Part shown: positions 364-58,083 of the stretch, piece after piece
Layout of the letters: every line of letters begins with the position of its first letter
How positions within the stretch are numbered: position 1 is the first letter of the stretch
Sequence record: LR756501.1
Length of the DNA stretch: 64,000 nt
Direction: 5' to 3' (one strand)
Position numbers and translations under genes: made by a program
The notes under the pieces: model-generated
Told to the model about the DNA's origin: nothing
What the model saw: only the letters and a program-made list of their open reading frames with translations
Database searches by the model: none

Positions 364-392
364 AAAAAGAGGGACTTAAGTCCCTCTTTTTT
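362..392. terminator. Bidirectional rho-independent terminator
   Basis: Inverted repeat AAAAAAGAGGGAC-TTAA-GTCCCTCTTTTTT between convergent genes. Confidence 0.85.
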
Positions 393-2508
393 ATGATCCA
401 TAACTATAATCAGATGCTCCACCTATACTATAATTAGCACCTCTCCAATCTTTATCTACCATTATTCTTCCATCGCCGTTACATCTAGGACAAGGACTTC
501 CGTCTTGTTGTCTCCCCCAACCAGAGCAGTTCCAACATTCTACTTCTTTCAAACCTTTTGTTTTAGGGGTCTTCTTAGGTTCTTCTTTTTTCTTTACTTT
601 ATCTTTAACTGCTTTAGCGATTTCTTCTTCCTCTTTCTCTTCTGGTACTCCGTGTTTTTTAATAAACTCGTCGTATAGTTTTAATTTTGGATCTTCGGAG
701 TATAATTTATCTTCTAATTCTTTTACTTTATCTGGTTCTTTCTTTGCTGCCTTTTTACCTTTTGGTTTGGCTTCAGGTTTGGCTTCTGCTTTTGCCTTAT
801 TATCTTCTTCAGCTATTTTATCTATCTCTTTCACACGTTTTGAGGTGGGAGATTCTTTTCCTATTTTTACCCCCCTTGATATTTCATCATAATAATCACC
901 CAATTCGTAATTATCTTTAAATTTTTGCTTTACAGCTTTTGGTTTACCTTCTACTGGTTCAAGTGTTGCTTCACCCTCATCGAAGTGTACCGTTATAACT
1001 CTACCGTCATCAAGTTCGAATTTAACGCTTTGTTGATTTCTACCATTTTTAATTCTACCACCTTGATAAGTACCAATTTCCCCGTTATATTTACTACCTG
1101 GATTAATATATTTAACAAGATTCTTACCTAATTTAGCATCTTCTTCCTGTAAAAATTTCATCCATTTAGCTGAGCCAGTAAGTTGTTCAGCCTTTTTCGG
1201 ATTATAATTAGCACCAATTATAGGTTTCGAAGAACCAGAAATATCTATTGGTGGAGGATAAGGGTACCCCTTGTCTGACCACGATTGATAATTTTTATAT
1301 TGGTCTGGAGTCAAAATAGGCGCTGCCTTCTTTTTCTTCTTTTCTTCTTCCTCTTCTATAATATCGTCTTCTATAGATCCTATAATATCTTCAACGTCAT
1401 CATGATTCATTTCTGTTAAATCGTCCATGTAATATTCAGCGAATAATCTTGCTTTGACCTTAGGATCACAACCATTTACTATATCTTGAATTTCTTCTTC
1501 ATATTCGTTACCTGGAAGTTCTCCTCTTTTTTGTAAATCTCTATAAATATCATCTTCCATTTTAAGCAGAGCATCCATCGGAACATTTTCTAACTCCTGT
1601 ACATCAAATAATTTCAATATTTCTTTTTTTACTGCTGGTTCTGACCCATCCAAGAAGACCTTTACTTGTTGCTTTGACGTTCCTTTTTTGTTTTTCCAAT
1701 AGTTATTAACATCGTATGGATTTTTAATAAACCATTTATCTTCCCATTTTTCTTCCTCCTTTGGATCTGGATAATCTTTCCACCAATCAGTCTCGCCAGT
1801 TCTTTTCATGTAAGCTTCGCTCTTACCAAATTCTACAATTCCTGCTCCTCCACAAAGATCACAATTACTTTTACCAGTTGACGATTTACCCGAACCACCA
1901 CATGCTGGGCATTCATCTAAAGCATCTTCTGCGTCTTTAATATCATCTTCATCTATGTCGTCTTCATCTATGTTTTTAATTGGTATAACAGGCATTCCCA
2001 TAGCTAATCCTGTTTTTGGATCAACAAAATTATTTCTATTTAATATCTTTTCTTTTTCGTCTTCGTCCCACTTTTCTTCCCCATAAGGATCAATTGATTT
2101 CATTGCTTTATCTTTTATATCGTGTAACACGTAAGCACATTTATCTAACATAAAATCAATAGTGTCTTTATGTTGTGATCTCTTATTAACCTTAAACTTT
2201 CTATCGTAAATTACTTCACCTTCTTTGTTAGTTATAGTGAGTGCGAACAATACTTCGTCATTTAAACCAAGACTTTTCTTTATTACAAAAGTATAACTCT
2301 TCTCAGTAGATTTAGCTTCCTTATTATCTTTATCTATTTCAAAATCATCACCTTTGAGCATTTTGATTTCTTCTTTAGAAAATTCATCAATAGGAAGCTT
2401 ATTAATTCTTTCTGCTTCTTCGTCTTCAAGATGTTGTTTGATTTTAGAAGGAGTCATTTTACGTTTTAACTCTTCGTTTATTTGAGAATATTTCCTGATG
2501 TAGTCCAA
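391..2508 (-). CDS. Large acidic/Lys-rich protein with two pairs of DnaJ-type CxxCxGxG zinc-finger motifs and a DPYGEEKW motif
   Basis: CPACGGSG..CDLCGGAG and CWNCSGWG..CPRCNGDG; no HPD J-domain; TTG start; N-terminus MDYIRKYSQINEE. Confidence 0.7.
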   Translation of the reverse strand: MDYIRKYSQINEELKRKMTPSKIKQHLEDEEAERINKLPIDEFSKEEIKMLKGDDFEIDKDNKEAKSTEKSYTFVIKKSLGLNDEVLFALTITNKEGEVIYDRKFKVNKRSQHKDTIDFMLDKCAYVLHDIKDKAMKSIDPYGEEKWDEDEKEKILNRNNFVDPKTGLAMGMPVIPIKNIDEDDIDEDDIKDAEDALDECPACGGSGKSSTGKSNCDLCGGAGIVEFGKSEAYMKRTGETDWWKDYPDPKEEEKWEDKWFIKNPYDVNNYWKNKKGTSKQQVKVFLDGSEPAVKKEILKLFDVQELENVPMDALLKMEDDIYRDLQKRGELPGNEYEEEIQDIVNGCDPKVKARLFAEYYMDDLTEMNHDDVEDIIGSIEDDIIEEEEEKKKKKAAPILTPDQYKNYQSWSDKGYPYPPPIDISGSSKPIIGANYNPKKAEQLTGSAKWMKFLQEEDAKLGKNLVKYINPGSKYNGEIGTYQGGRIKNGRNQQSVKFELDDGRVITVHFDEGEATLEPVEGKPKAVKQKFKDNYELGDYYDEISRGVKIGKESPTSKRVKEIDKIAEEDNKAKAEAKPEAKPKGKKAAKKEPDKVKELEDKLYSEDPKLKLYDEFIKKHGVPEEKEEEEIAKAVKDKVKKKEEPKKTPKTKGLKEVECWNCSGWGRQQDGSPCPRCNGDGRIMVDKDWRGANYSIGGASDYSYGS

Positions 2509-3906: not shown

Positions 3907-4254
3907 TTTATTTAACTCAATTAGTTTATTATAAATGATTTCACCGTATTTATTACCAACTTGCATACTTTCCATCGCCACAATTCCCATCTTAGATAGA
4001 TAGGTTTTACCTAAATCAGTTTTATAAAATTCAATTATTCCAAGTATTTCTTCGTTAGTGAAGTACTTATCATATATTGGAATAATTTCGTTTTCTATAT
4101 CTTTTATAACATCTTCTATATCAACGTTTTCTTCTTTATAATTTGGAATAAGATGTTTAACGGCGTTTATAACTGTTATAGCGGAATTTTCGTATGATTT
4201 AGTACCACCGTTTAATTCTAAAAGAGTTTTTATATTTTTAATTTTTTCTTCCAT
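3901..4254 (-). CDS. DUF2059-like protein
   Basis: IYDKYFTNEEILGIIEFYKTDLGK matches the DUF2059 signature. Confidence 0.75.
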   Translation of the reverse strand: MEEKIKNIKTLLELNGGTKSYENSAITVINAVKHLIPNYKEENVDIEDVIKDIENEIIPIYDKYFTNEEILGIIEFYKTDLGKTYLSKMGIVAMESMQVGNKYGEIIYNKLIELNKS

Positions 4255-4790
4255 TATTCTGACCAGTTTTCCTCTCCGTAAGGATCAAGTTCGTTATAAA
4301 CTCTAATACCTTCTGAAATGATTTTTTCTTTTGGTTTAATATATTCAGCGTCTGGATTAAACGAGTCATTTGATCTATTAACAGCGTCAAATGAAAAAAC
4401 TTTCTTTATATTCACTGTTCCATCTGAATTAACAGAACCAGCTGCTCTTGGTCTAAATACAAAATCTCCACCTTTATCTAAAATGTCTTTTAGTTCTTTA
4501 CCACAGGATGTGTTTAAAATCTTTATTTCGCCAACTACCTTATCGTCTTCGATTCTAACATTTTCGATGGTGTGGGATACTCTACGTAGAGTAGTATCAA
4601 ATGTATCTGGATAACCTAATTCCCCGTAAGCAACGTGTAATCTCTCTTGTTTTTCGTTGAACTCTTTAATGCAATTTCTCAAGTTTTCGTTATCTTGATA
4701 TATTCTACCGTTTAAATTAAGTTGATTTAAAGGTATTAGTGTTGTTGTAAATTTTTCTTTCATATTATTAGATTGCTTTTTCAAACCCAT
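4254..4790 (-). CDS. T4 gp21-like prohead protease homolog, probably catalytically inactive
   Basis: NLNGRIY, AYGELGYP (gp21 GELNHP), VSH, GEIKILNT.CG, FRPRAAGSV (gp21 VSSRGLGS), FDAV; C-terminal DPYGEENW. Confidence 0.78.
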   Translation of the reverse strand: MGLKKQSNNMKEKFTTTLIPLNQLNLNGRIYQDNENLRNCIKEFNEKQERLHVAYGELGYPDTFDTTLRRVSHTIENVRIEDDKVVGEIKILNTSCGKELKDILDKGGDFVFRPRAAGSVNSDGTVNIKKVFSFDAVNRSNDSFNPDAEYIKPKEKIISEGIRVYNELDPYGEENWSE

Positions 4791-32486: not shown

Positions 32487-34700
32487 TTAACTTATTCTTT
32501 TTATAAAAAATTTTAACATCTTCTGTAGCACTTTGTTCTTCTCGAAGAAATCATGGTTCAATAACTGTAAGTAATATTCTTTATTTGCTACAAAATATTT
32601 TTTAGATTCCCCCGTATCTTCGTAATTAAATACTACACCACCGTCCTTTTCCAATTCCACTTTAGCTCCACCAAATGTACTAGGTGCTATCATTTTAAAT
32701 AAATGTCTGAAAATAACTCTCGGTGGTGTTTTGAAATTATATCTCTTTACCAATACATTAACCATATCAGCAGTCATCATACCCCATACTGGTTTATTTT
32801 CTTTTATTAGTTCGTTTAGTCCTCTCATAATAGATTTAATATCCCCCGCTGACCCCACTAATTTATAGAAACCAGACGCTTGTGGTCTTACTGCTATATA
32901 ACCGTTATAATCACCGTAAAATTCCCAATTTTGACTCCTTTCTTTAAATTTATCGAAATCCCAAGCTGAACCAGTTGCTTTTTCGTAAGAAGCTTTAAAC
33001 AATTCATACCTTCTCTCAGTATCTTCAGCCTGCTTCTTTTCTGCTGGATCGTCATCTTTAAACATATCCCACATACTTCTCACACCACCAAAAACATATG
33101 AATTCATATCTTTATGTTTCTTAATCAATTTTGGATCGTCATGTAAAAATTCTATTTCCTCTTTAAAATTATATTCTTTGTGTCTATTAAGAAATTCTAT
33201 TGTTTTTTGTTTATTGGCGTTCAATAAACTACCAATTAATATCTTTCTTTTTAAATCAATAGTATCACCCAAATCTAACATTGGTTTATAACTCATATAA
33301 GTATCAATATACTTCTTAAAAAATTCGTCTCCAAACTTATTAATCAATATTTTTATTAATCTCTCATCCAATCTATCTATTCTAAATTTACCAAAGTTAT
33401 TCATGTAAACTTGTAAAGCGTTGATCATTATCCTATTATCTTTATTCATTTCAATAAACTCTGGATGACCACTTATAAAATCGTAATCCCCTTTATTAAC
33501 TTTTAATAAGAAAATATTAATAACCCAGTTTGGATCTTTCTTATAAATCCTTTCTAATTTATTAGTATCAATCCATTCACCGTCGTCAACACACTTTTTA
33601 ATTTCATTTTTATAACTGGATAAATCGTTTATTTCAATAATATCAAAATTATTAAACATCTTAGGAGCAAGTAATAAAGCTTGATGTGGTTCGTTACTAT
33701 GAATAAAACCGTCGCCGTGATCAACAAAAGCATCTATGCCAATTTTTCTAAACATATTACCCCACCTAGATACGTCTTCGTCAGCTAAATGATAAGTTAA
33801 CGTCCAAAATTTATGCACCTCAATATCTTGATCTTTTCTTATATTATAAGTCATATTGGAAAACATATCGTAATGAAATAAATGATGCTTGTCCTCCTCT
33901 TCTGGCTCCCCTTTAATATACTTCTTCACATTATCCAGTATCCTTTCAAAATAAGCACCCTTATTATAATACATATCAATTAACTTCTGGTAAAAAGGCT
34001 TTATATCTTCAAAAGTGGAATCATTATCCAGTACAACAGCCTTAGGATTAAGCTGATATAAATATATAAAACTAGGATCGTTTCTACCTTTATATGGAAA
34101 TAGGTCAAGGAATTCTTGAACTGTATTACATTCTTTAATTTTTGGTAAGAAGTCTATAGCTGGGTATGAGTAGACACCTGTTGGTGTACCAAAAGTATTT
34201 TTAGGGTTAATGAGTGAAACGTTAACTGAATCTCTAAATGATATGAATATATTTGGTTTAGAGCAGTCTGATTTTATTTTATCTATATTTGATTCTTCTG
34301 ATTTACTTTCGTTTACTTCAAGTTTTCCTTTTTTGTACCATCTTATTTTAGTAGTTTTATTTTCTACTGCTTCTTCTAATTTATAAACGGTGTCTGTACT
34401 GATTACATTAAATTGATCTGGCGTATCTCCCATTTTGATATTAGTTATTTTATCTTCACTAATATTTTGACTTCCAGAGTTTCCGCGTTCATATTTAGCA
34501 ATCAATCTTTTTTTATTATCATCGTAAACATATTCTTTTATATAATAAATACCATTCATAGAAATATCATCGTTAGTAAAAAGCACCCACCCTAAAAACT
34601 CTTGTTTTAGAACATAATAAGTCATTTCATCAGGAAAACGTCCTTTAAAATATTCATCCATTCTTGCTACAGGACCAACCTTTTCAAAATCCATCGTCAT
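32487..34700 (-). CDS. Large multi-module hypothetical protein, possibly with an ADP-ribosyltransferase-like domain
   Basis: 737 aa; RWYKKGKL motif followed by VNES; INPKNTFGTPTGVYSYP and GIDAFVDHGDGFIHSNEPHQ segments. Confidence 0.55.
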   Translation of the reverse strand: MTMDFEKVGPVARMDEYFKGRFPDEMTYYVLKQEFLGWVLFTNDDISMNGIYYIKEYVYDDNKKRLIAKYERGNSGSQNISEDKITNIKMGDTPDQFNVISTDTVYKLEEAVENKTTKIRWYKKGKLEVNESKSEESNIDKIKSDCSKPNIFISFRDSVNVSLINPKNTFGTPTGVYSYPAIDFLPKIKECNTVQEFLDLFPYKGRNDPSFIYLYQLNPKAVVLDNDSTFEDIKPFYQKLIDMYYNKGAYFERILDNVKKYIKGEPEEEDKHHLFHYDMFSNMTYNIRKDQDIEVHKFWTLTYHLADEDVSRWGNMFRKIGIDAFVDHGDGFIHSNEPHQALLLAPKMFNNFDIIEINDLSSYKNEIKKCVDDGEWIDTNKLERIYKKDPNWVINIFLLKVNKGDYDFISGHPEFIEMNKDNRIMINALQVYMNNFGKFRIDRLDERLIKILINKFGDEFFKKYIDTYMSYKPMLDLGDTIDLKRKILIGSLLNANKQKTIEFLNRHKEYNFKEEIEFLHDDPKLIKKHKDMNSYVFGGVRSMWDMFKDDDPAEKKQAEDTERRYELFKASYEKATGSAWDFDKFKERSQNWEFYGDYNGYIAVRPQASGFYKLVGSAGDIKSIMRGLNELIKENKPVWGMMTADMVNVLVKRYNFKTPPRVIFRHLFKMIAPSTFGGAKVELEKDGGVVFNYEDTGESKKYFVANKEYYLQLLNHDFFEKNKVLQKMLKFFIKRIS

Positions 34701-35847: not shown

Positions 35848-36807
35848 TTAGTACCTATTTCTGTTCCATTTATTATTAAGATCTCCCCAAAAACCATCAC
35901 CAGATGGCGTATCACTCCAGTGTAAACAATTATCTATAATATCTAATTTTGAATTTTTCAGTACGTTATTAAAATTATCTTTATATTTTTGGTGGCAATA
36001 TTTAATGAATTCATCGTAAGCCCCATTTTTTATAAGAAAGTCTCTAAACTTATCGTCTGTTATAAAATCAATATAATCTGGTACATTATAATCTATATTT
36101 GGGTCAAGGGTTAATTTGCCTTTATTATACCATTTAACAGCCTCATCCATATCATCGTCGTAGGCTCCAATTTTTTTATTCCATTTTGTATCAAGATTAG
36201 ACCAAAATCTAGAACCTCTTGAATTGTGTGTTGAATCATCCCAAGAAAAAGCGTTATCTATATATTGTTCTCTATCGTTATTTTTAAAATCTCTTTTAAA
36301 ACCTGGTTCACAACTAGCGACATAATCATCGTAACAAAAATTATATATTAGAAACTCTCTAAACTCGTTATCTGTTATAAAATCATCGAATTCTTTCTCT
36401 GGTGGCGATACGAAGTTTGTATCTATTGTTAATTTACCTTTCTTATACCATTTGACTGCTTCGTTATTTATTACTAATCTGAATAAGTCTGATATAACTG
36501 ATTCAAGATGGCAATTATATCTTGTTTTTGTTTTACCTTCTGGTGTATTATAAAAATAATATTTTAATTGGTCTTCTAATTGATCAGATATTTTATTATA
36601 TACTTCTCTGAAAGTTTTCATGTATTCATCGTTGGAATATTCGTTCCATTTTTTAAATTTATATTTATTAAATACAGAAAGAATTACACTTTTCTCTATT
36701 TCTACATCTTCTGGTTTTATTATCAAACCAAATTCAGCTTCACTTTTAAGAACGTTATTGTGAATAATATCAAGTAATAAACTATGGTCTTTAAATTCTC
36801 TAATCAT
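35848..36807 (-). CDS. Hypothetical protein with internal module duplication
   Basis: Two copies of EAVKWYxKGKL...FITD..FR.FL...ID....W......FW..L..KW. Confidence 0.7.
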   Translation of the reverse strand: MIREFKDHSLLLDIIHNNVLKSEAEFGLIIKPEDVEIEKSVILSVFNKYKFKKWNEYSNDEYMKTFREVYNKISDQLEDQLKYYFYNTPEGKTKTRYNCHLESVISDLFRLVINNEAVKWYKKGKLTIDTNFVSPPEKEFDDFITDNEFREFLIYNFCYDDYVASCEPGFKRDFKNNDREQYIDNAFSWDDSTHNSRGSRFWSNLDTKWNKKIGAYDDDMDEAVKWYNKGKLTLDPNIDYNVPDYIDFITDDKFRDFLIKNGAYDEFIKYCHQKYKDNFNNVLKNSKLDIIDNCLHWSDTPSGDGFWGDLNNKWNRNRY

Positions 36808-37399
36808 TGTCTATATTATCTTTTAGGAAATCTGAAAATCTATTATATTTTTTCCATTCTGTTTTTAAAAATATTCCCTCAGCCTTATTTATTAATTCTA
36901 CACTTTCCTTATTTCTCAATTTATGTGGTTTAACTTCGTAATCTAATCTACATAAATCTAAACCATCTGCGTCTCTTAATATAGAAACAGTTTGCCAATA
37001 CGGATTTTCTCTTTCTATTTCATATCTTTCTGAATGATTAGATATAGCTAATCTTATAGCTTTTAAATCTTCTTCATTCATACCATTTTTAATAAAGAGT
37101 TCTTTAAAGAGTGGGAATTTTTCTGAAGCAGCGTCTTTACCGTGTACTTTACAATTATCGTCATTTCTTCTTGCCATATCGTGAACAAAAGCCGCCATGA
37201 ATGCCCTTTTAGTGTTGAGTTTATCTCCTATTTCATTACCAATCATAAGACAATTAAACATAACTCTGAATGTGTGATTAATACCGTGTATATCAGATTT
37301 ATGATTAAAATTATCATCAGATAAATTAAAATCGTTAAAGTTTATATTTAAACTCTTGGTGAAGTCCATAAAGTTATATTTACTAAATTCTTTAATCAT
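36800..37399 (-). CDS. HD-domain phosphohydrolase
   Basis: IHGINHTFRV, FVHDMAR, HG..AA, NHS, LRDADGLD; probable start MIKEFSKY at 37399. Confidence 0.85.
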   Translation of the reverse strand: MIKEFSKYNFMDFTKSLNINFNDFNLSDDNFNHKSDIHGINHTFRVMFNCLMIGNEIGDKLNTKRAFMAAFVHDMARRNDDNCKVHGKDAASEKFPLFKELFIKNGMNEEDLKAIRLAISNHSERYEIERENPYWQTVSILRDADGLDLCRLDYEVKPHKLRNKESVELINKAEGIFLKTEWKKYNRFSDFLKDNIDND

Positions 37400-39923
37400 T
37401 CCATTCCTCCTCTCCATATGGATCATTTGGATGTAATTTCAATCTCAACTCTTCTCTTTTTCTATTTATCTCTGTATTAAAGATATGTTGAATTTTTACT
37501 TCCTTATAATCTCTTAATTTATCCATTTGTATATAATCTTTGAACGGATTGACTTCTTCAATCTCACCATGCTTATAAATTCTATCACACATTATAGCGT
37601 TCCATCCCCAGTCACTATGAGTAGAATGGAATCTAAAAACATACAACAACATTTTCTTTCTTTTTTTAGTTATAAGTTTATTTTCTTTTCCTGGTCGTTC
37701 AAGAACGTCGTAATCATTTTTATCATAAGGAATTTCACATATTATTCTGTACCATTCGCCCTTTCTTAAAAAAGGAACTATATAATCTTCGAAGTAATTG
37801 TGCCAACGTTTTAACTCCAGTTCTTCGCCTGTTTTATTAAATTCAACGTATTCATTTATTTTACTTTCATTCCATATTTCTTCACCGTAAGGATCAATAT
37901 CTATGTTTATCAAACTCAATTCCTCTTTATCTTTATCAAATTTTTTACACAATTTTTCTCTCTCGTCATAAGTTATTTTTAAAGCTTTTTCGGATTTTAT
38001 TGGGTAAAATAATTTGCCCCTAACCTCGCGATCTAATTTAACTGTATAACTATTAAAATGACTATCATCAACAAAAACTATTTCACCTGTTAGATTTGGA
38101 TATTTATCATATACACAAAGTATTGAATCACCAACTTTAAAATTTTCATTTATTTTACTCTCATTCATATATAAATAATTATCCATATAATCTTGGTCTA
38201 AAAATAGAACATCTTTATTAAGCGATGAATATCGAACTCTTTCAGCGTTACCGTATTCATTTTTATTATATTTTCCTACCCAATGATAAGGCACTAATTC
38301 AATTTTATCTTTTTTAATTCTTTCTATTTCTCTTTCTGAGATAGGTGATAAAACTTGATGTTTTTTAATTATATTCAAATCTTGTGTTCCGCCAAAAGAA
38401 TGTATTTGGTAATGACTTGTTAAAAAAGCAAAATAATAATCGTAACTACCTAAAAATTTCTTTTTGAAGACAATATACTTATCCTTAAAGTCGTCGTCGT
38501 TAATTTTAACATCCCAACCCCAGTCTTCTTCACCGTAAGGATCAATTTCAGCCATTTTTATTCTAGTGGCGTTTCTTTTCTTACTCTTTTTGGATTCCCA
38601 TACTTCTTCACCATAAGGATCTAGTTCTTTTTGTTTTAATCTTCTTTCTTCTTTCTCCTTCTCTAATTTTCTCCATAACTCTTTTATTCTATCTTCATAT
38701 TCTTCATAAGGAACTACATCAAAATTGGCTAAATTCCACCAACCATCTTTATCAATCCAATTATCATTTTTCGGTAATGGCCCTCTAATAAGAGTTATAC
38801 CATGTGAAATAGTTCTCACATCTTGAATTTTAATAGGTAATCCGACTGGATAACCACTCCCAGTGAACACTGGTTCTCCGCCTCTGTCAAACGCAAATGA
38901 TGCTTGATCTTTACTCTTTAAAATAGCTATTTTACCAATTAATTCATTACCTAGGTTTTCAACTATTTCCAATGGCATAATCTTATGAACACCGATATCT
39001 TTTCCTTTTACTCTACTCCAATAATAATGATCAGTATTATTTATATTTGTGATTCTAAATTCTATATCTTCTAAACCAGGATTTGATACTTTAACAATAT
39101 CATTTATCTTTATATTTAAATTTTTAAATTTATTTCTATTTTCTCTATTTTCAGCTAATTCAATATGTTCAATAATTATATTTCTTTTTTCGTTCCATGT
39201 ATCTATTTTAATAGTTCCGAATCCACTTGGAGCCGGTCTAATTTCACCTTTTCTATATTCAAACATATAACCAATAGTGAAAATATCTGACAAATTAGCA
39301 GAAGTCTCCATTACCTTGATAACTTTATATCTATAATCATCGAATTTTATTCTATACCAGTTATCAATTTGGATAAAATCTTTTAATAACCCCATTCTAA
39401 CCAATTTAGCACGATCTTGTAAAACAAAAATCTCTTTTCCTCCACCAAAAAATTTATTATTTTTATTTATATACATATAATCAGGCACATGTGAAAAGTC
39501 AACGTATTCATTTAAATCATCATTTTTTTGTAATTTACCGTGCTTAAACCATCTCACTCTTGGTTCCTGTTCTGTTTCGGAGTAAACTTGAATAATATTC
39601 GGATTCATACAAAAATCAATAGTTCTAAATCTTATAGCTCGATCTTCTTTACTACCAATGTTAATGTATGGTTGATTTGATCCGAATACAATTTCTTTAG
39701 ACACTAATCCTACTATATCATTATCATCGTAATGAATCTTAATAAGTTTTCCTTTTAACGTATATGATAAATATTCTTTTACAGCGATATTATTATCCAC
39801 GTTCTCACGATATTTATAAGCATCAATTACTCTATTTAAACTTTTTAAATCATTTTCATTTAAATAATCAAGAAGATTGATCCATTCATCCACGTTCTCA
39901 AAGATGTTGTATTTTGTAATCAT
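37392..39923 (-). CDS. Multi-module polyprotein-like putative virion protein with four DPYGEExW motifs
   Basis: 843 aa; MITKYNIFEN start; internal LNE/INE junctions; KOW/SH3-like FKVGD...GEIV module. Confidence 0.7.
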   Translation of the reverse strand: MITKYNIFENVDEWINLLDYLNENDLKSLNRVIDAYKYRENVDNNIAVKEYLSYTLKGKLIKIHYDDNDIVGLVSKEIVFGSNQPYINIGSKEDRAIRFRTIDFCMNPNIIQVYSETEQEPRVRWFKHGKLQKNDDLNEYVDFSHVPDYMYINKNNKFFGGGKEIFVLQDRAKLVRMGLLKDFIQIDNWYRIKFDDYRYKVIKVMETSANLSDIFTIGYMFEYRKGEIRPAPSGFGTIKIDTWNEKRNIIIEHIELAENRENRNKFKNLNIKINDIVKVSNPGLEDIEFRITNINNTDHYYWSRVKGKDIGVHKIMPLEIVENLGNELIGKIAILKSKDQASFAFDRGGEPVFTGSGYPVGLPIKIQDVRTISHGITLIRGPLPKNDNWIDKDGWWNLANFDVVPYEEYEDRIKELWRKLEKEKEERRLKQKELDPYGEEVWESKKSKKRNATRIKMAEIDPYGEEDWGWDVKINDDDFKDKYIVFKKKFLGSYDYYFAFLTSHYQIHSFGGTQDLNIIKKHQVLSPISEREIERIKKDKIELVPYHWVGKYNKNEYGNAERVRYSSLNKDVLFLDQDYMDNYLYMNESKINENFKVGDSILCVYDKYPNLTGEIVFVDDSHFNSYTVKLDREVRGKLFYPIKSEKALKITYDEREKLCKKFDKDKEELSLINIDIDPYGEEIWNESKINEYVEFNKTGEELELKRWHNYFEDYIVPFLRKGEWYRIICEIPYDKNDYDVLERPGKENKLITKKRKKMLLYVFRFHSTHSDWGWNAIMCDRIYKHGEIEEVNPFKDYIQMDKLRDYKEVKIQHIFNTEINRKREELRLKLHPNDPYGEEEWND

Positions 39924-40005
39924 GAATCTATATATAAAAAAACGAATATAAACTTTTAGAACAATGAATTATATAATCGGAGACTAAAAAAATAATTAAT
40001 TATGA

Positions 40006-40971
40006 ATGATTAAATTTAACCTAATAATTGATGGCAACTACCTACTACAAAAATCTGTTCACATACTTCACAAAAATAAAATATTAGTATCAGAATTATA
40101 CAACGTAATAGAAAGAGATTATCACACACTTACAAAATTATACCCATTCGATAAGATATACTTTATATCAGATAGTTTTAGAAATTGGAGAAAAGAATTT
40201 TTTGAAGGGTACAAAGGCACAAGAAAACGTGACGATAAAGTGGATTGGGACTTCGTCTTCGGTGAATACACCAAACTCAAAGAATTCCTTAAAACTAAAA
40301 AGAACTGCGTACAATTCCAAATGGATAACCTAGAAGGCGATGATCTTATTGCCTACGTTATGAAGACACTTAACAACAAAGGACAATCAAACTTCTTAAT
40401 GTCTAACGATAGTGACCTTTTACAACTAATTAACTACGACTTAGATAAGAGATATATCAATATAATGTATAATTACAAGATGACTGATGATAGAGTATTT
40501 ATACCTGAGCATTACCAAATATTTACTAAGTACGTAAAAGACACCTACGTTGATGATATGTTTGAAGATAACAATGAAACGGAATTCTTATCTTTTCTTG
40601 ATAATTTCACAAGAACAAGAAAGACTTCTCTTATCAATTCTGAATTAGAACTCTTTATGAAAGTAATGGGCCATAACAAAGATAATATCAAATCAGTATA
40701 TATGAAAGGTGATAGAGGTATAGGTAAAAGTGGTATTCTTAAAATATATGATACATACAAAGAAACCCATTCTGAACCAATTGATTTTAACTCAATTGAA
40801 TTTAAAGATAGAATTATAGATCATATTAAACTATATAAAAGATTGAAAGACAACAGCATGAATGAAATGATGAGTGATAGATTAACAAGAAATTTGACTT
40901 TAGTTAAATTGGATGAAACGTCTATGCCACCACATTTATATAAATTAATGAAGAAGGAGGTAAACTTATGA
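40006..40971 (+). CDS. T4 RNase H-like 5'-3' exonuclease (FEN family)
   Basis: IIDGNYL, WRKEFFEGYKGTR, EGDDLIA, SNDSDLLQL, KDNI motifs. Confidence 0.85.
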   Translation: MIKFNLIIDGNYLLQKSVHILHKNKILVSELYNVIERDYHTLTKLYPFDKIYFISDSFRNWRKEFFEGYKGTRKRDDKVDWDFVFGEYTKLKEFLKTKKNCVQFQMDNLEGDDLIAYVMKTLNNKGQSNFLMSNDSDLLQLINYDLDKRYINIMYNYKMTDDRVFIPEHYQIFTKYVKDTYVDDMFEDNNETEFLSFLDNFTRTRKTSLINSELELFMKVMGHNKDNIKSVYMKGDRGIGKSGILKIYDTYKETHSEPIDFNSIEFKDRIIDHIKLYKRLKDNSMNEMMSDRLTRNLTLVKLDETSMPPHLYKLMKKEVNL

Positions 40972-41489
40972 AAATAAAAGACATTTTGAAGAAATTAGGA
41001 ATTATTAAAAAAGAGTATGTTCCAATCGAACCTTATAGAGGCGGTAATATGTACGATTTGTTTGTTAAAAAGACTATTGATAAACGTTTAGGACGTAAAA
41101 ACACAGCGGTTATTGATGACGATAAAATTAATTGGAACTCAACTTATGAAGGACCAAAAATTAGGAGATTTACTATTCCTGTTAATGGTTTATCAAGAGA
41201 AGAGGCTGAAGATCAAATTAAGAAATTGATGAGTGAGTACCACGAAGATGTGGAGTGGAAGGATGATTATAAATTACCAGAAGTTAAAAGAGAATATTCC
41301 GATTTAGATCCTTACGGTGAAGAAAATTGGAACGATGATATTCACTCTTTTGATAAAGATTACTGGTTTCCCACTAAAAGACAAAAAAGTTTGATTGAAC
41401 AAGCCAAGATTATGTATTCAAAGAATAACGCCGCGATATATAAAAAGTTTGTAATACCTATTCCTAATTGGAACGCAGTTTTAGAATAA
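40968..41489 (+). CDS. Small protein with portal gp20-like segment and DPYGEENW motif
   Basis: RRFTIPVNGLSREEAEDQIKKLMSEYHEDV...DYWFP resembles the portal RRIFYIDVGNLP..KAEQ....M..Y...ED(F/Y)WLP segment. Confidence 0.5.
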   Translation: MKIKDILKKLGIIKKEYVPIEPYRGGNMYDLFVKKTIDKRLGRKNTAVIDDDKINWNSTYEGPKIRRFTIPVNGLSREEAEDQIKKLMSEYHEDVEWKDDYKLPEVKREYSDLDPYGEENWNDDIHSFDKDYWFPTKRQKSLIEQAKIMYSKNNAAIYKKFVIPIPNWNAVLE

Positions 41490-53694: not shown

Positions 53695-54780
53695 ATGGCA
53701 TTAAAAAATTTAGTATGTAAAGGTAAAATCACAAACACTGGATCTTTAGGAATAATAGATAAAGGTTTTTGTTACTCTACAACAACAACATATCCTACAT
53801 TAGCTGATTCTGTGTGGAGTGAACCATCACCGCTAGTTAATGATAATTTTAAGAGCATAATTACAGGTCTTACTCAAGCCACATATTACTATGTTAACGC
53901 ATATGCTATTAATTCAATGGGAGTATCATATTCAGCAGCAGACCAAACAATTTGGATAAAAACTTCTGGTATTGTTAATTTCCCAACAATATCAGTAAGT
54001 ATTACGAATAACGGAATACCTCAAACAGTTTACGAAATGGGAACGAGTTCAAATCTTGTAGTATCTGGGGAAACAATAAAATGGGACGAAACAATATTTA
54101 CAAATGGTTATTTAAATCAAATAAGCAGTCCTCCACCACCAGGAAATAACACTATTATGAACTGGACTGGTTATCAATCAACATATATAACTACACCAAA
54201 TTCTAATCCTCCTCCTACTAATATAACTGTGAATTTTTCACCGATAGCACTTGACCAAGGATCTTGGTTTATGAGACAAGAAGCTTATTATAATTGTGGA
54301 AACCCTCAATATACTATAAGTTCTACCACCACAATAGACGCTGTATTTCCTTTTTTATGGGTGTTGAAAAGTGGTTATCAAGCAAATCAATATTTTAACC
54401 CTACTATAATGATAGGTAATAATTATTTTTACTACGAAGCATCTTCCACCCCAAATCCAACGACACCTTTTAACGGTAAATTAATAGAAAAAATGGGAGA
54501 TAAAACTATATGGGTAACTCCAAATAATAATACTCACAAAGTTTTAGTTCTTGGTTATCCAGCGTCTTACGGAATTATTCAATATAGTGGGTCAACAACA
54601 GGCGGTTGGGTAAACGCTACACTTCAAAATCCACTCGTGAAATCCTCTACTAATGGTCAATTCGGAATAGTAACACCTTGGCCAACATGTTCTTACTACG
54701 TTTTACAATATCAATTCCCAAGTTATTCTAATGTACCTATTCCGTTCTATATTCATTTTCCACCTCCGGTGTTGGTATAA
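53695..54780 (+). CDS. Putative tail/adhesin protein (partial FN3 plus a C-terminal domain shared with 46233..50885)
   Basis: DKGFCYS...ITGLTQATYYYVNAYAIN; AVFPFL and YPASYGII match the 1550-aa protein tail. Confidence 0.65.
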   Translation: MALKNLVCKGKITNTGSLGIIDKGFCYSTTTTYPTLADSVWSEPSPLVNDNFKSIITGLTQATYYYVNAYAINSMGVSYSAADQTIWIKTSGIVNFPTISVSITNNGIPQTVYEMGTSSNLVVSGETIKWDETIFTNGYLNQISSPPPPGNNTIMNWTGYQSTYITTPNSNPPPTNITVNFSPIALDQGSWFMRQEAYYNCGNPQYTISSTTTIDAVFPFLWVLKSGYQANQYFNPTIMIGNNYFYYEASSTPNPTTPFNGKLIEKMGDKTIWVTPNNNTHKVLVLGYPASYGIIQYSGSTTGGWVNATLQNPLVKSSTNGQFGIVTPWPTCSYYVLQYQFPSYSNVPIPFYIHFPPPVLV

Positions 54781-54843
54781 AAATATTTAAATTATTTGAA
54801 AAAAAAAATTTATATATAACGAAAAATTACTAACTTTGCTAAA

Positions 54844-55887
54844 ATGAACAATTACGTATTAAAGTTTAATGGATATATGAAAAAAGAATCTAATGAAGTT
54901 CAAGAAGCTACTGAATGGCCTTTGTACATATCTGATGAATTAGAGAAAATCTTAAAAAGAATCATATCTAATCCTATAGCAAAAAAATTAGTAGATTGTG
55001 GTAGATCCGGATTAAGTGGCAAGAAAGTAGTTAGTGACGTGTCTTTCCTTGATGTAGAAGGAGATAGTAAAAGTGTATCTTATTTTCCTATTACAAGAAT
55101 GGGGAAACTAGAAAAAGATATATCTCCCACATATAGACCAGAAAAAGATGATTCCATTTGGAGTTCGAGGTTGAGACAAAATATGACCTGGGGGAAAATG
55201 ATTAATAAATTATTTCCTGGTGAATTTACAAACATGGACATAGATAATTTCTATAATAGGTTTCGTCCAGAAATTGATGTGAAACAAAAAGAACAAGAAA
55301 GATTTAAAGTTGTTCGCGGCGAAGATATTAGATATTGGTACCTTGCAGATCATTGGGACGGATCTTTCAACTCTTGTATGCAAGGTTCTGGATCACAACC
55401 ATTTTTCGATATTTATTGTAACAATCCAGAGAAATGTGGAATGTTAATTTATTTTAGTGAAAGAAACCCTGATAAAATTATAGGTAGAGCACTTGTTTGG
55501 AACAATTTATTAAAACCAAGTGGCGATACCGCCGAGGATAAAAATCCATATACTTTATTAGATAGGGTTTATTTTCTTAATAATCAAGGTCCTCAAATAG
55601 AGGCAGCTTTTCATAAATACGCTATAGACCATAAATGGTTATACAAAAAAGGTGATTCATTTATGATGGACGGTGTAAGAAAAACAACATCTGTTGCAAC
55701 ACGTTTGAAACCAATAGATTATACTTATTATCCATATGTAGATACTATGGCTTATTATACACCAGCAACGGGTAGGGCAGCGTCAACACCAGGTAATCCT
55801 GGTAGAGATCCAAACAATCCAGCGAGAACTTTTCCTCGTTACAGTTTAAAAAATCAAAATGGTACTAAGTCACCAGTAGATAGATAA
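54844..55887 (+). CDS. Paralog 1 of a four-gene SCM/GRAL-W/DRxY/YPY-DT family
   Basis: GEDIRYWY, NSCM, FDIYCNNPEKC, GRALVW, DRVY, YPYVDT. Confidence 0.75.
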   Translation: MNNYVLKFNGYMKKESNEVQEATEWPLYISDELEKILKRIISNPIAKKLVDCGRSGLSGKKVVSDVSFLDVEGDSKSVSYFPITRMGKLEKDISPTYRPEKDDSIWSSRLRQNMTWGKMINKLFPGEFTNMDIDNFYNRFRPEIDVKQKEQERFKVVRGEDIRYWYLADHWDGSFNSCMQGSGSQPFFDIYCNNPEKCGMLIYFSERNPDKIIGRALVWNNLLKPSGDTAEDKNPYTLLDRVYFLNNQGPQIEAAFHKYAIDHKWLYKKGDSFMMDGVRKTTSVATRLKPIDYTYYPYVDTMAYYTPATGRAASTPGNPGRDPNNPARTFPRYSLKNQNGTKSPVDR

Positions 55888-55904
55888 AAAATAAAAATTA
55901 AGAT

Positions 55905-56990
55905 ATGAGCACATTATCACATTATAAAAACTTTGTTAATGAAGCAGGAGAACCAGTGATTGAACCAGAAAAACCTAAATTCGTTAAAGGTGAAAAGAAA
56001 CTCTTGAAGTTATTTATTTCGCCTAAGCTAGAAGGATTGCTTCAGAAGATGATGAAAACGGCGGATTTTCAAGCTAAAGCTATAGCTAGTAAGATTCTAA
56101 ATATTGATCAAGAACCAGATGAAAATCTTTTCGATATATCTTATATAGATGTTGATAATGATAAGGACGATTCTCTATCTTTTATGCCAGCTCAAAGAGC
56201 TTGGTTCAAAATGGGATTTACTGATCAAGCTGATGCAGATAAAAAACCTGCACCAAATTGTGAAATGTGGACAGGTGCTGGTAGACAATCTTTAGGTGTT
56301 GGTAAGTTTATTAATAGACTTTTTGATAATTTCTCAGATAAAGCAATAGATAGTTTTGTTAAATCATATAGGGCTGAAATCGCAGCAACTATGATTTATG
56401 ATAGATTTAAATTGGTAACTGGTGAAGATATTAGATTCTGGTACGCTGAATCAAATTATTATAAAGATCCAGGTGGTGGAAAAGACGCTGGCCTTAATAA
56501 CTCTTGTATGAGGTACGACGCTAGTTCAAGAGAAGGTAAAAATTGCCAACCATATTTTGATATTTATGTTAAAAACCCAGAAAAATGTGCAATGTTAATT
56601 TTAACAAACACACAAAATAAACTTCTTGGTAGAGCACTCGTATGGTCAAATCTTAGAAAACCAACAGATAAAACATTCATGGATAGAATTTATGTTTTCA
56701 AACAATCTGACGCTGAATTATTTAAGAAATACGCTATGGAAAAAGGTTGGTTATATAAATACGATCAACAAGCTTACGACGCTTCATATGTAGAAAACGG
56801 ACAAAGAGTTAATAAATCAGTTGCTCTTCAATTAAAACCCGCTGAATATAAAACTTATCCTTTCATGGATAGTTTAAAATATTACAATCCAGGTACTGGT
56901 AGATTGGGTTCAGATCCAGGTAACCCAGTTGAAGGAATGAAAAGACTAAAACTCGAAGGCGGTGGAGGACAAGCCGGTAGAGTAGACTAA
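55905..56990 (+). CDS. Paralog 2 of the same family
   Basis: GEDIRFWY, NSCM, FDIYVKNPEKC, GRALVW, MDRIY, YPFMDS. Confidence 0.75.
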   Translation: MSTLSHYKNFVNEAGEPVIEPEKPKFVKGEKKLLKLFISPKLEGLLQKMMKTADFQAKAIASKILNIDQEPDENLFDISYIDVDNDKDDSLSFMPAQRAWFKMGFTDQADADKKPAPNCEMWTGAGRQSLGVGKFINRLFDNFSDKAIDSFVKSYRAEIAATMIYDRFKLVTGEDIRFWYAESNYYKDPGGGKDAGLNNSCMRYDASSREGKNCQPYFDIYVKNPEKCAMLILTNTQNKLLGRALVWSNLRKPTDKTFMDRIYVFKQSDAELFKKYAMEKGWLYKYDQQAYDASYVENGQRVNKSVALQLKPAEYKTYPFMDSLKYYNPGTGRLGSDPGNPVEGMKRLKLEGGGGQAGRVD

Positions 56991-56999
56991 AAATAATAT

Positions 57000-58067
57000 T
57001 TGATAGTGGGACTTAAAAATTTTAATGGTTATGTATATGAAAGTGATATTAACGTGAAAGAACTTCCGATGTTTTTTTCGCCTAAACTTACTGAACTATT
57101 AAATTCAATAGATTCTAAAATATCAAAAGAATTATTAGATTTACCAAAGTCTGATGTTAAATTTCAAAATTCTTACGCTGATCTAACTAACGATATTGAT
57201 ACTATTAGTGTTCTACCAGCAAATAGAGTTGGTAGATTAGCTGGCGTAACAGAAGAAGATCTAGTTAATCCAAAGCCAAATAGTCCAGTATGGGGTGAAA
57301 AAGGAAGACAATCAATGAGAATTGGTGCTTTCGTCACAAGAACTTTACCAAAATATGCTGGAACAAAAGACCTTGAGAATTTTGTACATCTCATTAAAGG
57401 TAAATTAGATCAGGATAATTACGAATTAAAGATGGTAAGAGGTGAAGAGATACGTAAATGGTACCACGTTAAATCTTATTATAATCCTCATCCAGGTATG
57501 GAAGAAGCACCAGAAGAGGGAGTACTTGATGTTAGAACTCCTCTTATGAAGTCTTGTCTTAAACAACCAGAAAAACAATCATTTTTTGATATTTATTGCC
57601 AAAATCCCGAACAAGTTGGCATGTTAATCATGTTAAATAAAGAAGGCAAATTGGTAGCAAGAGCAATAATATGGTTTGATTGTTTTGTTGTGGATATACC
57701 AGGCAATCCAACAAAGGGTGTATTAATGGATAGGATTTATTATACAAACGAATCAGATGTAAATATCTTTATTGATTACGCTAAGGAGCGTGGTTGGTGG
57801 TACAAACCAAATCAGGCAAAAGAGGTTTATACTTTTGTAAAGGACGGACAAGTATGTGATAAAGGTATTACAACCAGATTAAAAAATCACGGTGTATTTG
57901 CTCGTTACCCATATATAGATACAATGTGTTTTTACACACCAGACACAGGAAGATTATCAACAATTAGAGGTAAACCCACTAAAAGTCCATTTACTGGTGA
58001 AACAATGGAAAGGTTCCAATTACATAAAGCCAACGGTGGTACAAAAAGACTCGCCAGAGACAAATAA
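57000..58067 (+). CDS. Paralog 3 of the same family
   Basis: GEEIRKWY, KSCL, FDIYCQNPEQ, ARAIIW, MDRIY, YPYIDT; GTG start. Confidence 0.75.
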   Translation: MIVGLKNFNGYVYESDINVKELPMFFSPKLTELLNSIDSKISKELLDLPKSDVKFQNSYADLTNDIDTISVLPANRVGRLAGVTEEDLVNPKPNSPVWGEKGRQSMRIGAFVTRTLPKYAGTKDLENFVHLIKGKLDQDNYELKMVRGEEIRKWYHVKSYYNPHPGMEEAPEEGVLDVRTPLMKSCLKQPEKQSFFDIYCQNPEQVGMLIMLNKEGKLVARAIIWFDCFVVDIPGNPTKGVLMDRIYYTNESDVNIFIDYAKERGWWYKPNQAKEVYTFVKDGQVCDKGITTRLKNHGVFARYPYIDTMCFYTPDTGRLSTIRGKPTKSPFTGETMERFQLHKANGGTKRLARDK

Positions 58068-58083
58068 AATAAACAAATTTTAA

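Follow-up and report, generated by a model that had tools for sequence, protein, structure and literature searches.

A conserved DPYGEExW peptide at the joints of a modular protein and across the proteome of a very large uncultured phage

The window analysed here is a stretch of 64,000 nucleotides (nt) from LR756501.1, the 735,411 bp record of an "uncultured phage". Of the phage genomes in Al-Shayeb et al. 2020 this is the largest; it is a member of the Mahaphage clade, with Bacteroidetes as the predicted host (PMC7162821). The gene in question is open reading frame (ORF) 843, an uninterrupted frame of 843 codons that starts with ATG on the minus strand (37392..39923 in the ORF list). ORF843 encodes a chain of six or more small, independent domains, which are linked by an acidic peptide, DPYGEExW, hereafter called the tag. 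The grammar of leader, domain and tail from which it is built is common to roughly a tenth of the genes of this phage, and relatives insert, delete, split and fuse modules at the tags. The explanation that we prefer is that ORF843 is an in-frame fusion of autonomous units, that the tag serves for docking or sorting, and that the units are most likely cargo of the phage head; we give this a probability of about 0.4.

ORF843 is 100% identical to LR756501.1 44455–46983, window positions being record positions minus 7060; LR756503.1 is a duplicate record. The full LR756501.1 record was read as 15 overlapping pieces, each scanned separately, and a simple ORF call gave 1005 ORFs with 93% coverage and a proteome of roughly 228,000 amino acids (aa). 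Counts given below refer to this genome unless another source is named.

Modular construction of ORF843

A preliminary description of the window had set out ORF843 as a leader, a basic junction, four DPYGEExW peptides and two NESKINE segments; all of these are present, in that order (Table 1). Starting at the N terminus, the leader is followed by modules A, B1, B2, C, D and E, and the chain terminates in a tag. Within the junction between A and B1 (RVRWFKHGKL..DLNE, residues 122–139) the sequence WFKHGKL comprises residues 125–131, and NEYVDF (residues 138–143) passes into B1. NESKINE does occur twice. Its coding sequence is a direct repeat of 22 nt that brackets module D, the two copies agreeing at 21 of 22 positions. 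No similarity between modules was detected when ORF843 was compared with itself by BLAST, and no Pfam family was matched at E ≤ 0.1. Effector domains of polyvalent proteins (methylases, anti-restriction proteins, peptidases) were found in ORF843 neither by Pfam at this threshold nor as a significant Foldseek match.

An exhaustive phmmer search of 1.8e9 representative proteins gave 41 relatives of ORF843, mostly as partial matches, and a word-indexed search of 5.8e9 proteins added nothing to these. Every module of ORF843 has homologs among the phmmer relatives, either alone or in other combinations. Module B1 stands alone as leader, B1 and tail in P0020 (196 aa), and also in P0032; the stand-alone versions of the remaining modules (listed in Table 1) have about 150 aa for C, 114 aa for D and 162 aa for E. 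Modules A and B2 are found in other chains, with homologs of B2 forming the N termini of P0016 and P0036. The stand-alone proteins bear the same leader and tail as the chains.

ORF843 is flanked by a divergent 5′–3′ exonuclease gene and by an HD gene, in surroundings of replication and nucleotide-metabolism genes. In relatives the variable gene at this syntenic locus encodes versions of 162, 383, 512 or 641 aa, compared with 843 aa here. L137 has module E only (P0008) beside the exonuclease, on a contig that ends at its stop codon, so that only the exonuclease side is seen. L142 has a 512-aa chain of other modules, and L139 has a homing-endonuclease-like gene together with a 383-aa chain. In L118 the ortholog has 641 aa, with 89–91% identity in modules C and E and about 60% in A–B1. 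It lacks B2 (residues 331–432) and D (residues 594–691), with the edges exactly at tags. A second variable modular locus behaves alike, comprising 478 aa here and 842 aa in L141. On the strength of the stand-alone modules, the variable syntenic locus and the losses in L118, the earlier view of the gene as cassette-built, with the tags as borders for shuffling, is borne out; where close relatives differ by the gain or loss of a module, the difference lies exactly at tags, and neither the order nor the content of the modules is constant among relatives, a comparison that the preliminary description had proposed.

The homing-endonuclease-like gene (370–373 aa, DUF7487, with repeated N..KYG units) lies between the exonuclease and the modular gene in L118 (10631–11752) and L139 (3224–4336), and is absent at window 39924–40005.

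Fusion and fission can also be followed at the gene boundaries. An 8-nt stop/start overlap, ATGATTA(A/G), ends one gene with (N/D)-D-stop and starts the next, in another frame, with M-I-(K/R); it is found at window 37392–37399 (ORF843/HD gene), at 36800–36807 (HD gene/next gene) and at L138 281–288. Since it links three consecutive genes in the window, a 1-nt indel at the overlap would fuse neighbouring genes in frame. The fused junction of ORF843, DPYGEEVW-ESKKSKK...RIKMAEIDPYGEEDW, is a gene boundary in L138, where ...DPYGEEIIDD-stop overlaps by ATGATTAA the start MIKKFEIFEAKKAK...RIRMTDIDPYDEEDW. The converse is seen in L139, where DPYGEDIWESK-LIKEF leads in frame into a homolog of the gene starting MIREF. 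Many tails overlap the next start codon or lie directly against it, and many are followed by gaps of 13–90 nt.

Occurrence and conservation of the tag

The tag is not limited to ORF843. A six-frame scan of the genome for DP[YFW]GE[ED] returned 109 occurrences, every one of which is DPYGEE. The ORFs contain 106 copies, distributed over 91 of the 1005 (∼9%), where 0.009 would be expected from the amino-acid composition; only low-complexity collagen-like repeats supply commoner hexapeptides than DPYGEE. Tryptophan is found two residues past EE in 100 of the 106 copies. In its extended form the consensus reads (K/R)(K/R)(V/I)(F/Y)(S/T)x(L/E)-DPYGEE-(N/D/E)-W-(D/E/N)(D/E/N), and KRVFSELDPYGEENWNE is the 18-residue tag peptide. 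Forty copies form C-terminal tails, 22 lie within 40 residues of the N terminus and 44 are located between domains; many chains carry several tags, and one carrier ORF begins directly MKRVYSELDPYGEENW. The tails have a fixed length in most cases, 28 of the 40 ending exactly xWxx-stop, four residues past EE. Three further copies occur in the window, in ORFs 391–2508, 4254–4790 and 40968–41489.

The collagen-like triplet repeats GTSGTS/GSSGTS are by far the commonest hexapeptides of the proteome (>900 copies), and are located in very large ORFs, for example at record 399879–422930.

The conservation is that of a peptide. The 106 copies of DPYGEE are encoded by 48 distinct 18-mers in which all synonymous codons are used, they occur on both strands, and the DNA flanking different copies is unrelated. 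A DNA motif, or a Shine–Dalgarno sequence placed in the tail, was rejected on these grounds and because the glycine codon is mostly GGT, leaving no hidden GGAG; likewise a DNA-level repeat read in frame was rejected because conservation is not fixed at the nucleotide level and does not extend into the flanks. Selection at the tag works on the protein, not on the DNA. The codons are nonetheless skewed, with CCT at 68% (36% genome-wide), TAC at 73% (36%) and GGT at 67% (51%), the p values lying between 1e-5 and 1e-15. Behind this skew there could be either selection for accuracy where residues are critical or a shared ancestry of the segment.

The proteins that carry the tag are otherwise diverse. 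Once the tag is masked, BLAST finds a paralog within the genome for only 12 of the 91 carriers, and ORF843 has none, so that a single expanded paralog family was rejected as the source of the tag. Matches of the carriers to Pfam and PHROG are heterogeneous, including GNAT acetyltransferase, methyltransferases, phosphoribosyltransferase, nucleotidyltransferases and DUF7919. A carrier of 1179 aa (record 154866–158402, minus strand; L004 7866–11402) has four DPYGEExW tags at the joints between a cytidine/dCMP deaminase, three small FKVGD-type modules, a CCA-adding tRNA nucleotidyltransferase and an HD domain. Matches to tail sheath and Gp23 were not counted as evidence for presence in the virion; these are probably small ORFs sharing a domain with larger non-carriers.

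In an alignment of the 16-sequence module-C family the invariant columns are D, P, E, E, D and W of the tag, and the residue at the glycine position varies (G/D/N/S/Q/C). The tag is thus the most conserved part of this family, which weakens the view that it is a passive linker.

Outside this genome the back-translated tag pattern was found in at least 120 stretches of IMG/VR from about a dozen metagenomes, many of them with 3–7 copies. The IMG/VR matches listed contain 303 copies, 92 of them C-terminal; 54 of the 92 have exactly two residues past the tryptophan, and among these matches the tail length is fixed in about 25 contigs too. In 596 Gb of bacterial and archaeal genomes there were 72 single matches where roughly 69 are expected by chance, and mimicry of a host peptide or a cellular origin of the tag was rejected for this reason. 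Among GenBank phages, a set that would take in Lak phages where these have been deposited, ORF843 and the tag consensus match only the two records of this same genome. From its chance-level frequency in cellular genomes and its absence from other GenBank phages, the tag is a hallmark of one uncultured, AT-rich phage lineage. No paper in the phage literature mentions 'DPYGEE'. Variable modular genes and leaders resembling that of T4 are known in other forms; we found no prior description, however, of an acidic peptide that is strictly conserved and carried by 9% of the proteins of a phage, at C termini and domain junctions.

Predicted structure

The full-length protein was modelled with AlphaFold2 from a 31-row query-anchored alignment, giving a mean predicted local distance difference test (pLDDT) score of 61 and a predicted template-modelling score of 0.36. 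Two regions are modelled with confidence, B1 with pLDDT 76–89 over about residues 180–260, and C with pLDDT 86–98 over about residues 470–590. Module A is an alpha + beta structure with pLDDT of about 45–65, and module D is poorly modelled (pLDDT 28–38). All four tags and the RWFKHGKL junction have pLDDT of about 40–58, three of them (tag no. 1 and the junction included) partly below 50. A K/E-rich helix precedes tags nos. 1, 3 and 4, and one copy of the tag is drawn as a tiny hairpin. When module C is modelled alone from a 16-row alignment the domain has pLDDT 84–96, and the 30 residues that contain the spacer and DPYGEEDWGWD have no secondary structure, with pLDDT of about 50.

ORF843 is not predicted to be one folding unit, because the motifs lie in low-confidence linkers between separate domains; the domain parsing proposed in the preliminary description therefore does not return a single integrated protein. 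In these models the tags are placed in disordered linkers, and a peptide that is highly conserved, yet predicted to be disordered, has the features typical of a linear motif read in trans.

Foldseek comparison of the full model with PDB and BFVD, and of module C with PDB, gave no match at E ≤ 1e-3; the best match of module C in PDB had E = 0.7. The earlier assignment of module D as KOW/SH3-like is one by sequence only, from its FKVGD type; there is no Pfam match to D, and the AlphaFold model of this region is poor.

Leader, basic motif and candidate cleavage sites

A leader of the form M-[ILV]-[KRTNE]-x-[FY] starts 63 ORFs, comprising 26 of the 91 tag carriers and 37 of the 914 other ORFs (odds ratio 9.5, p = 6e-13). 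Position 8 of the leader is aromatic in 54 of the 63, and the commonest residues at positions 9 and 11 are I and E. The sequence [ILV]xE ends at positions 8–13 in 33 of the 63 leaders, compared with 153 of 942 other ORFs (p = 3e-10). The leader of ORF843 reads M-I-T-K-Y5-N-I7-F8-E9, with aromatic residues at 5 and 8.

The leader bears some resemblance to that of the internal proteins of phage T4. T4 IpII and IpIII start MKTYQEFIAEA (read from AF158101). Head-internal proteins of the T4 type have an N-terminal propeptide of 10–19 aa, with aromatic residues at 4 and 7, I/L at 8 and E at 10. In the T4 capsid targeting sequence (CTS) head targeting resides in residues 4 and 7, and processing by gp21 in 8 and 10 (PMC9026906); the T4 internal proteins are a diverse set that have only the leader in common (PMC3012670). 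The aromatic, aromatic, I and E residues at positions 5, 8, 9 and 11 of the leader in the present genome compare with positions 4, 7, 8 and 10 in T4.

A phage protease of the corresponding family is encoded. Matches to Pfam Peptidase_S77 and to phrog_207 reveal S77 homologs, with at least three or four paralogs, and two small ones (178 and 207 aa; window 4254–4790 and record 619760–620383) end in a DPYGEExW tail. Four of the 12 [IL]xE sites in ORF843 (IFE-9, LNE-139, INE-593 and INE-691) directly precede modules A, B1, D and E (p about 0.002). Stand-alone homologs retain [ILV]xE at the end of the leader, and the residues that follow (YVEF..., FKVGD...) are the same whether the module is fused or free. 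Genome-wide, [IL]xE after a tag is in mild excess only (28% versus 15%). Of the five cleavage-like sites drawn as (I/L)xE in the preliminary description, three fit as drawn and DLNE fits if read one residue on, but VWE does not.

A second, basic motif, (V/I)(R/K)WY(K/S)KGKL, is present in 24 copies in 17 ORFs. Like DPYGEExW it is found at C-terminal, N-terminal and internal positions, and it carries the opposite charge. In the window it occurs at 36112–36132, 36430–36450, 34320–34340 (ORF 32487–34700) and 39531–39551 (ORF843). An ORF of 488 aa at record 290091–291557 has five copies of the basic motif between modules of roughly 90 aa.

A promoter-like sequence T(T/A)ATATATA(G/A) lies upstream of 216 of the 1005 ORFs, and the 8-mer ATATATAG exceeds background 15-fold. 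Between the end of the motif and the ATG lie either about 5–9 or about 15–24 nt; with so short a distance, some mRNAs may be nearly leaderless. Most of the structural-gene block (window 46–64 kb) is without it. Among the 1005 ORFs, tag carriers are not enriched for the TTATATATAG motif and leader-bearing genes are modestly enriched. The promoter class was set aside as a clue to timing, since this pattern of enrichment does not settle early versus late expression.

Function of the tag

We infer that DPYGEExW is a short linear docking or sorting tag read in trans by a common partner, and not an element of domain structure or a signal at the DNA level. The argument is based on the number of copies found against that expected, the unrelated nature of the carriers, the invariance of a peptide predicted to be disordered, the use of synonymous codons and the fixed length of the tails.

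In the explanation that we prefer, each unit opens with the leader M-I-K-K-[FY]-x-x-[FY]-I-[NK]-E, continues with one small domain, whatever its fold, and closes with a tail that is usually ...(K/R)(V/I)(F/Y)(S/T)xx-DPYGEExW-xx-COOH and less often (V/I)RWYKKGKL. Such units exist as separate genes, often overlapping by ATGATTAA, or as fused chains. By analogy with T4 the prohead is the most likely destination of the tagged units. Inside the head they would be 'ejection' proteins, comparable to the diverse internal proteins of T4, which have only a capsid-targeting leader in common. The S77 protease would cut after the leader-derived IFE-9, LNE-139, INE-593 and INE-691, freeing small proteins. 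The remnants of leaders would thus provide the cleavage signal, and the acidic tail would be a handle holding the cargo to the core or shell rather than a cut site. The central idea of the preliminary description is retained in this reading, with the cleavage signal moved from the tag. A destination in the prohead is suggested by the T4-CTS-like spacing of the leader, the [ILV]xE sequences within leaders, the co-occurrence of leader and tail, the [IL]xE sites at the start of modules, and the S77 homologs, two of which are tagged. The leader spacing, the [ILV]xE sequences ahead of modules and the S77 homologs lend indirect support to the predicted cleavage as well. Virions of giant phages can contain about 89 different proteins (PMC9026906), so that about 90–130 tagged proteins would not be excessive.

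A number of observations weigh against delivery to the head and processing there. The likeness to the T4 CTS is short, extending to four positions only, and these are shifted by one residue. The 12 [IL]xE sites of ORF843 are not an enrichment over shuffled sequences (13 ± 3), and modules B2 and C have no such site before them. Most of the small carriers that have only a tail are without the leader. Large metabolic fusions, such as that of deaminase, CCA-adding enzyme and HD domain, are unlikely head cargo, as are the carriers, at least two in number, that have transmembrane helices. An S77 paralog of 808 aa (record 73913–76336), from a paralog family of four members, adjoins portal-like and other large structural-looking genes and is without a tag; from its position alone it is probably the real prohead protease. 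ORF843 itself has TTATATATAG upstream and lies in a non-structural neighbourhood, between the exonuclease and HD genes. Also on this side, no cultured phage carries the motif.

A wider proposal, to which we would give odds well below even and which is best regarded as tentative, is that a clade of giant, AT-rich, uncultured phages has a proteome-wide system of address labels. With the acidic tag, the basic tag and the T4-CTS-like leader, about one protein in ten would be sent to a common destination. This could be the giant head, from which the proteins would be co-injected, or else a multivalent assembly in the cell that the tags drive; the tags would also be joints for swapping effector domains, and ORF843 would be a chain of six effectors that is cut after loading.

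The tag might alternatively act in the cytoplasm, with acidic DPYGEExW and basic RWYKKGKL recruiting phage proteins to a hub such as a scaffold, a chaperone, an unfoldase or protease, or a condensate or replication factory, and ORF843 serving, uncleaved, as a multivalent adaptor. All that speaks for a linear motif applies equally to this proposal. Carriers that are enzymes or membrane proteins fit better with the cytoplasm, as does a promoter class unlike that of the structural genes, and the presence of several tags on a chain would provide multivalency. The partner could be the abundant SH3/Tudor-like modules, a TPR-type clamp for acidic-aromatic C termini, or the basic tag paired with the acidic one. 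Small FKVGD-type barrels often come after the tag, and Foldseek returned weak matches to small barrels of the Tudor/KOW/Sm type, but these are not significant (E ≥ 1e-3, with a template-modelling score <0.2 for the whole model). The T4-CTS-like leader and the conserved [ILV]xE before modules would be left unexplained, and we consider a cytoplasmic hub unlikely, though it is the strongest competitor to head cargo.

If the tags were passive, they would be self-contained linkers or capping hairpins that keep domains soluble and have spread by fusion, fission and recombination, and ORF843 would remain uncleaved. Every observed point of fusion, fission or indel is indeed marked by a tag, the strong codon bias fits with a shared ancestry of the coding segment, and the tiny hairpin drawn by AlphaFold at one copy would be in keeping with such a role. 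Yet a passive linker would hardly be conserved above all other parts of a family, nor would it be expected at the ends of single-domain proteins or to require the exact xWxx-COOH terminus observed in the tails here and in 54 of the 92 listed from other phages; the flanks moreover lack DNA homology. Passive tags are rather improbable.

We regard it as improbable to a greater degree that the tag is itself a protease site and ORF843 a true polyprotein, cut after G-E-E (cf. S/A/G-x-E of phiKZ-type S77 enzymes), by a retropepsin-like enzyme, or at an acid-labile Asp-Pro bond. S77 proteases cut after glutamate with few other determinants (PMC9026906, PMC5694885), and the E-E of the tag is invariant. 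However, the glycine position varies and yet the dispensable D, P and W do not; the eight conserved residues are far more than known prohead-protease sites show (PMC9026906), and there is no obvious purpose in trimming four residues from 40 C termini. A retropepsin-like gene convergent with a modular DPYGEE gene, both here and in L141, is the point in favour of the second variant. That gene encodes an aspartic protease of 139–141 aa (record 283618–284037, minus strand, L006 38618–39037; L141 10530–10955, matching Pfam Asp_protease_2 / gag-asp_proteas in L141); the modular gene convergent with it is variable, and the synteny with an SbcC-like gene is conserved in the two phages.

A co-translational role, in which the nascent tag would tune termination and re-initiation at overlaps or cause a 2A-like break inside chains, is very improbable despite the fixed spacing to the stop codon and the tails that overlap or abut the next start (including by ATGATTAA), given that 66 of the 106 copies are not at a stop codon, that many tails are followed by the gaps of 13–90 nt, that the junctions read (L/I)DPYGEExW with no NPGP, unlike the 2A sequence D(V/I)ExNPGP, and that we know of no such mechanism in bacteria.

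Features of the window

The positions of the elements of ORF843, and of the other genes discussed, are collected in Table 1. The window also contains five tandem paralogs of 341–361 aa at 53695–59109 (plus strand), at least four of which belong to a 24-member family scattered through the genome; one small member of this family carries the tag.

Table 1. Elements of ORF843 and associated genes, in window coordinates
Feature	Position	Strand	Basis or remarks
Internal DPYGEEKW at 2068–2091 in 705-aa ORF	391..2508	-	Motif scan
S77/T4-gp21-family protease homolog, 178 aa, ending ...RVYNELDPYGEENWSE-stop	4254..4790	-	phrog_207 head maturation protease, E = 3.4e-19
319-aa gene, start MIREF	35848..36807	-	Next in the string after the HD gene; VKWY(K/N)KGKL at 36430–36450 and 36112–36132
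HD-domain gene, start MIKEF	36800..37399	-	Downstream; overlaps the ORF843 stop by 8 nt (ATGATTAA)
ORF843 stop codon	37392–37394	-	ORF list
C-terminal tail DPYGEEEWND, residues 834–843	37395..37424	-	Motif scan
Module E, residues 692–833, begins YVEF	37425..37850	-	Stand-alone P0008; also P0014, P0006, P0035
Direct repeat copy 2 GAATGAAAGTAAAATAAATGAA, NESKINE residues 685–691	37851..37872	-	21/22 positions the same as copy 1
Tag no. 3 DPYGEEIW, residues 677–684	37872..37895	-	Motif scan
Module D, residues 594–676, FKVGD-type then helix	37896..38144	-	SH3/KOW-like by sequence only; stand-alone P0010
Direct repeat copy 1 GAATGAGAGTAAAATAAATGAA, encoding NESKINE residues 587–593	38145..38166	-	Repeat comparison
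Module C, residues 469–585, most widespread module	38169..38519	-	Stand-alone in P0012, P0019, P0022, P0037
Tag no. 2 DPYGEEDW, residues 461–468	38520..38543	-	Motif scan
Basic spacer ESKKSKKRNATRIKMAEI, 18 residues, 443–460	38544..38597	-	Conserved N-terminal extension of module C (alignment)
Tag no. 1 DPYGEEVW, residues 435–442	38598..38621	-	Motif scan
Module B2, residues 331–434, including K/E-rich helix 406–432	38622..38933	-	Missing in L118 ortholog
Module B1, residues 140–330, begins YVDF	38934..39506	-	Beta-rich, confidently modelled
Basic junction RVRWFKHGKLQKNDDLNE, residues 122–139	39507..39560	-	Ends LNE ahead of module B1
Module A, residues 10–120	39564..39896	-	Homologous stretches in P0031 and P0041, in other contexts
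Leader MITKYNIFE, residues 1–9, ends IxE	39897..39923	-	Class M-I-K-K-[FY]-x-x-[FY]-I-[NK]-E
Promoter-like TTATATATAG	39928..39937	-	4 nt (ATTC) ahead of ORF843 ATG
Internal DPYGEENW at 41307–41330 in 173-aa ORF	40968..41489	+	Motif scan

Significance and comparison with known systems

If the tag is a sorting signal, about 90–130 proteins of the largest known phage genome would become one functional class, and a set of hypothetical genes would become a testable list, for example of ejected anti-host effectors. Head targeting by a leader would then scale to giant phages, with a second C-terminal or internal tag having been acquired. The evolution of a hypervariable locus is also made concrete, in terms of units with standard ends, ATGATTAA overlaps and cassettes flanked by short repeats. 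The pattern of the 8-residue tag detects members of an uncultured clade in metagenomes, and the tag might serve to load foreign proteins into capsids.

The closest parallel to head cargo is provided by IpI, IpII, IpIII and Alt of T4, otherwise unrelated proteins with a short leader in common. As in T4, a protease of the S77 family is encoded by this phage, and the loci are hypervariable between relatives. The differences lie in scale and in construction: about 63 ORFs bear the leader here and 91 the tail, compared with a handful in T4; the dominant C-terminal or internal acidic tag has no T4 counterpart; and the units are fused into chains here, with packaging and cleavage being predicted only.

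In encapsulin cargo-loading peptides, and in the C-terminal capsid-targeting tails of HK97-type proteases and scaffolds, a terminal peptide directs unrelated proteins into a shell of the HK97 fold. That peptide is short and conserved, as is the tag, and is located mostly at the C terminus, at times at the N terminus. The tag has a different sequence, however, 41% of its copies are internal, some carriers are membrane proteins, and the carriers are scattered over the genome rather than located beside the shell gene.

Short linear motifs of the eukaryotic style are found in disordered regions, examples being PCNA PIP boxes, the W-acidic motifs that bind kinesin light chain, and EEVD sequences held by TPR clamps. 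The tag resembles these in having 8–10 residues, in being acidic and aromatic, in its predicted disorder and in being more conserved than its surroundings, and it recurs on unrelated proteins at N-terminal, C-terminal or internal sites. It differs in its setting, a bacteriophage proteome, and in the unusual strictness of its conservation.

Lastly, the polyvalent proteins of phages and conjugative elements, and viral polyproteins, are, like ORF843, long chains of independent modules, with a content that varies between relatives and a role that is probably directed at the host. The domains known from polyvalent proteins were not found in ORF843 by Pfam; unlike a polyprotein it has no embedded protease domain, and its processing is a prediction; and the tag that delimits its modules is also found on single-domain proteins.

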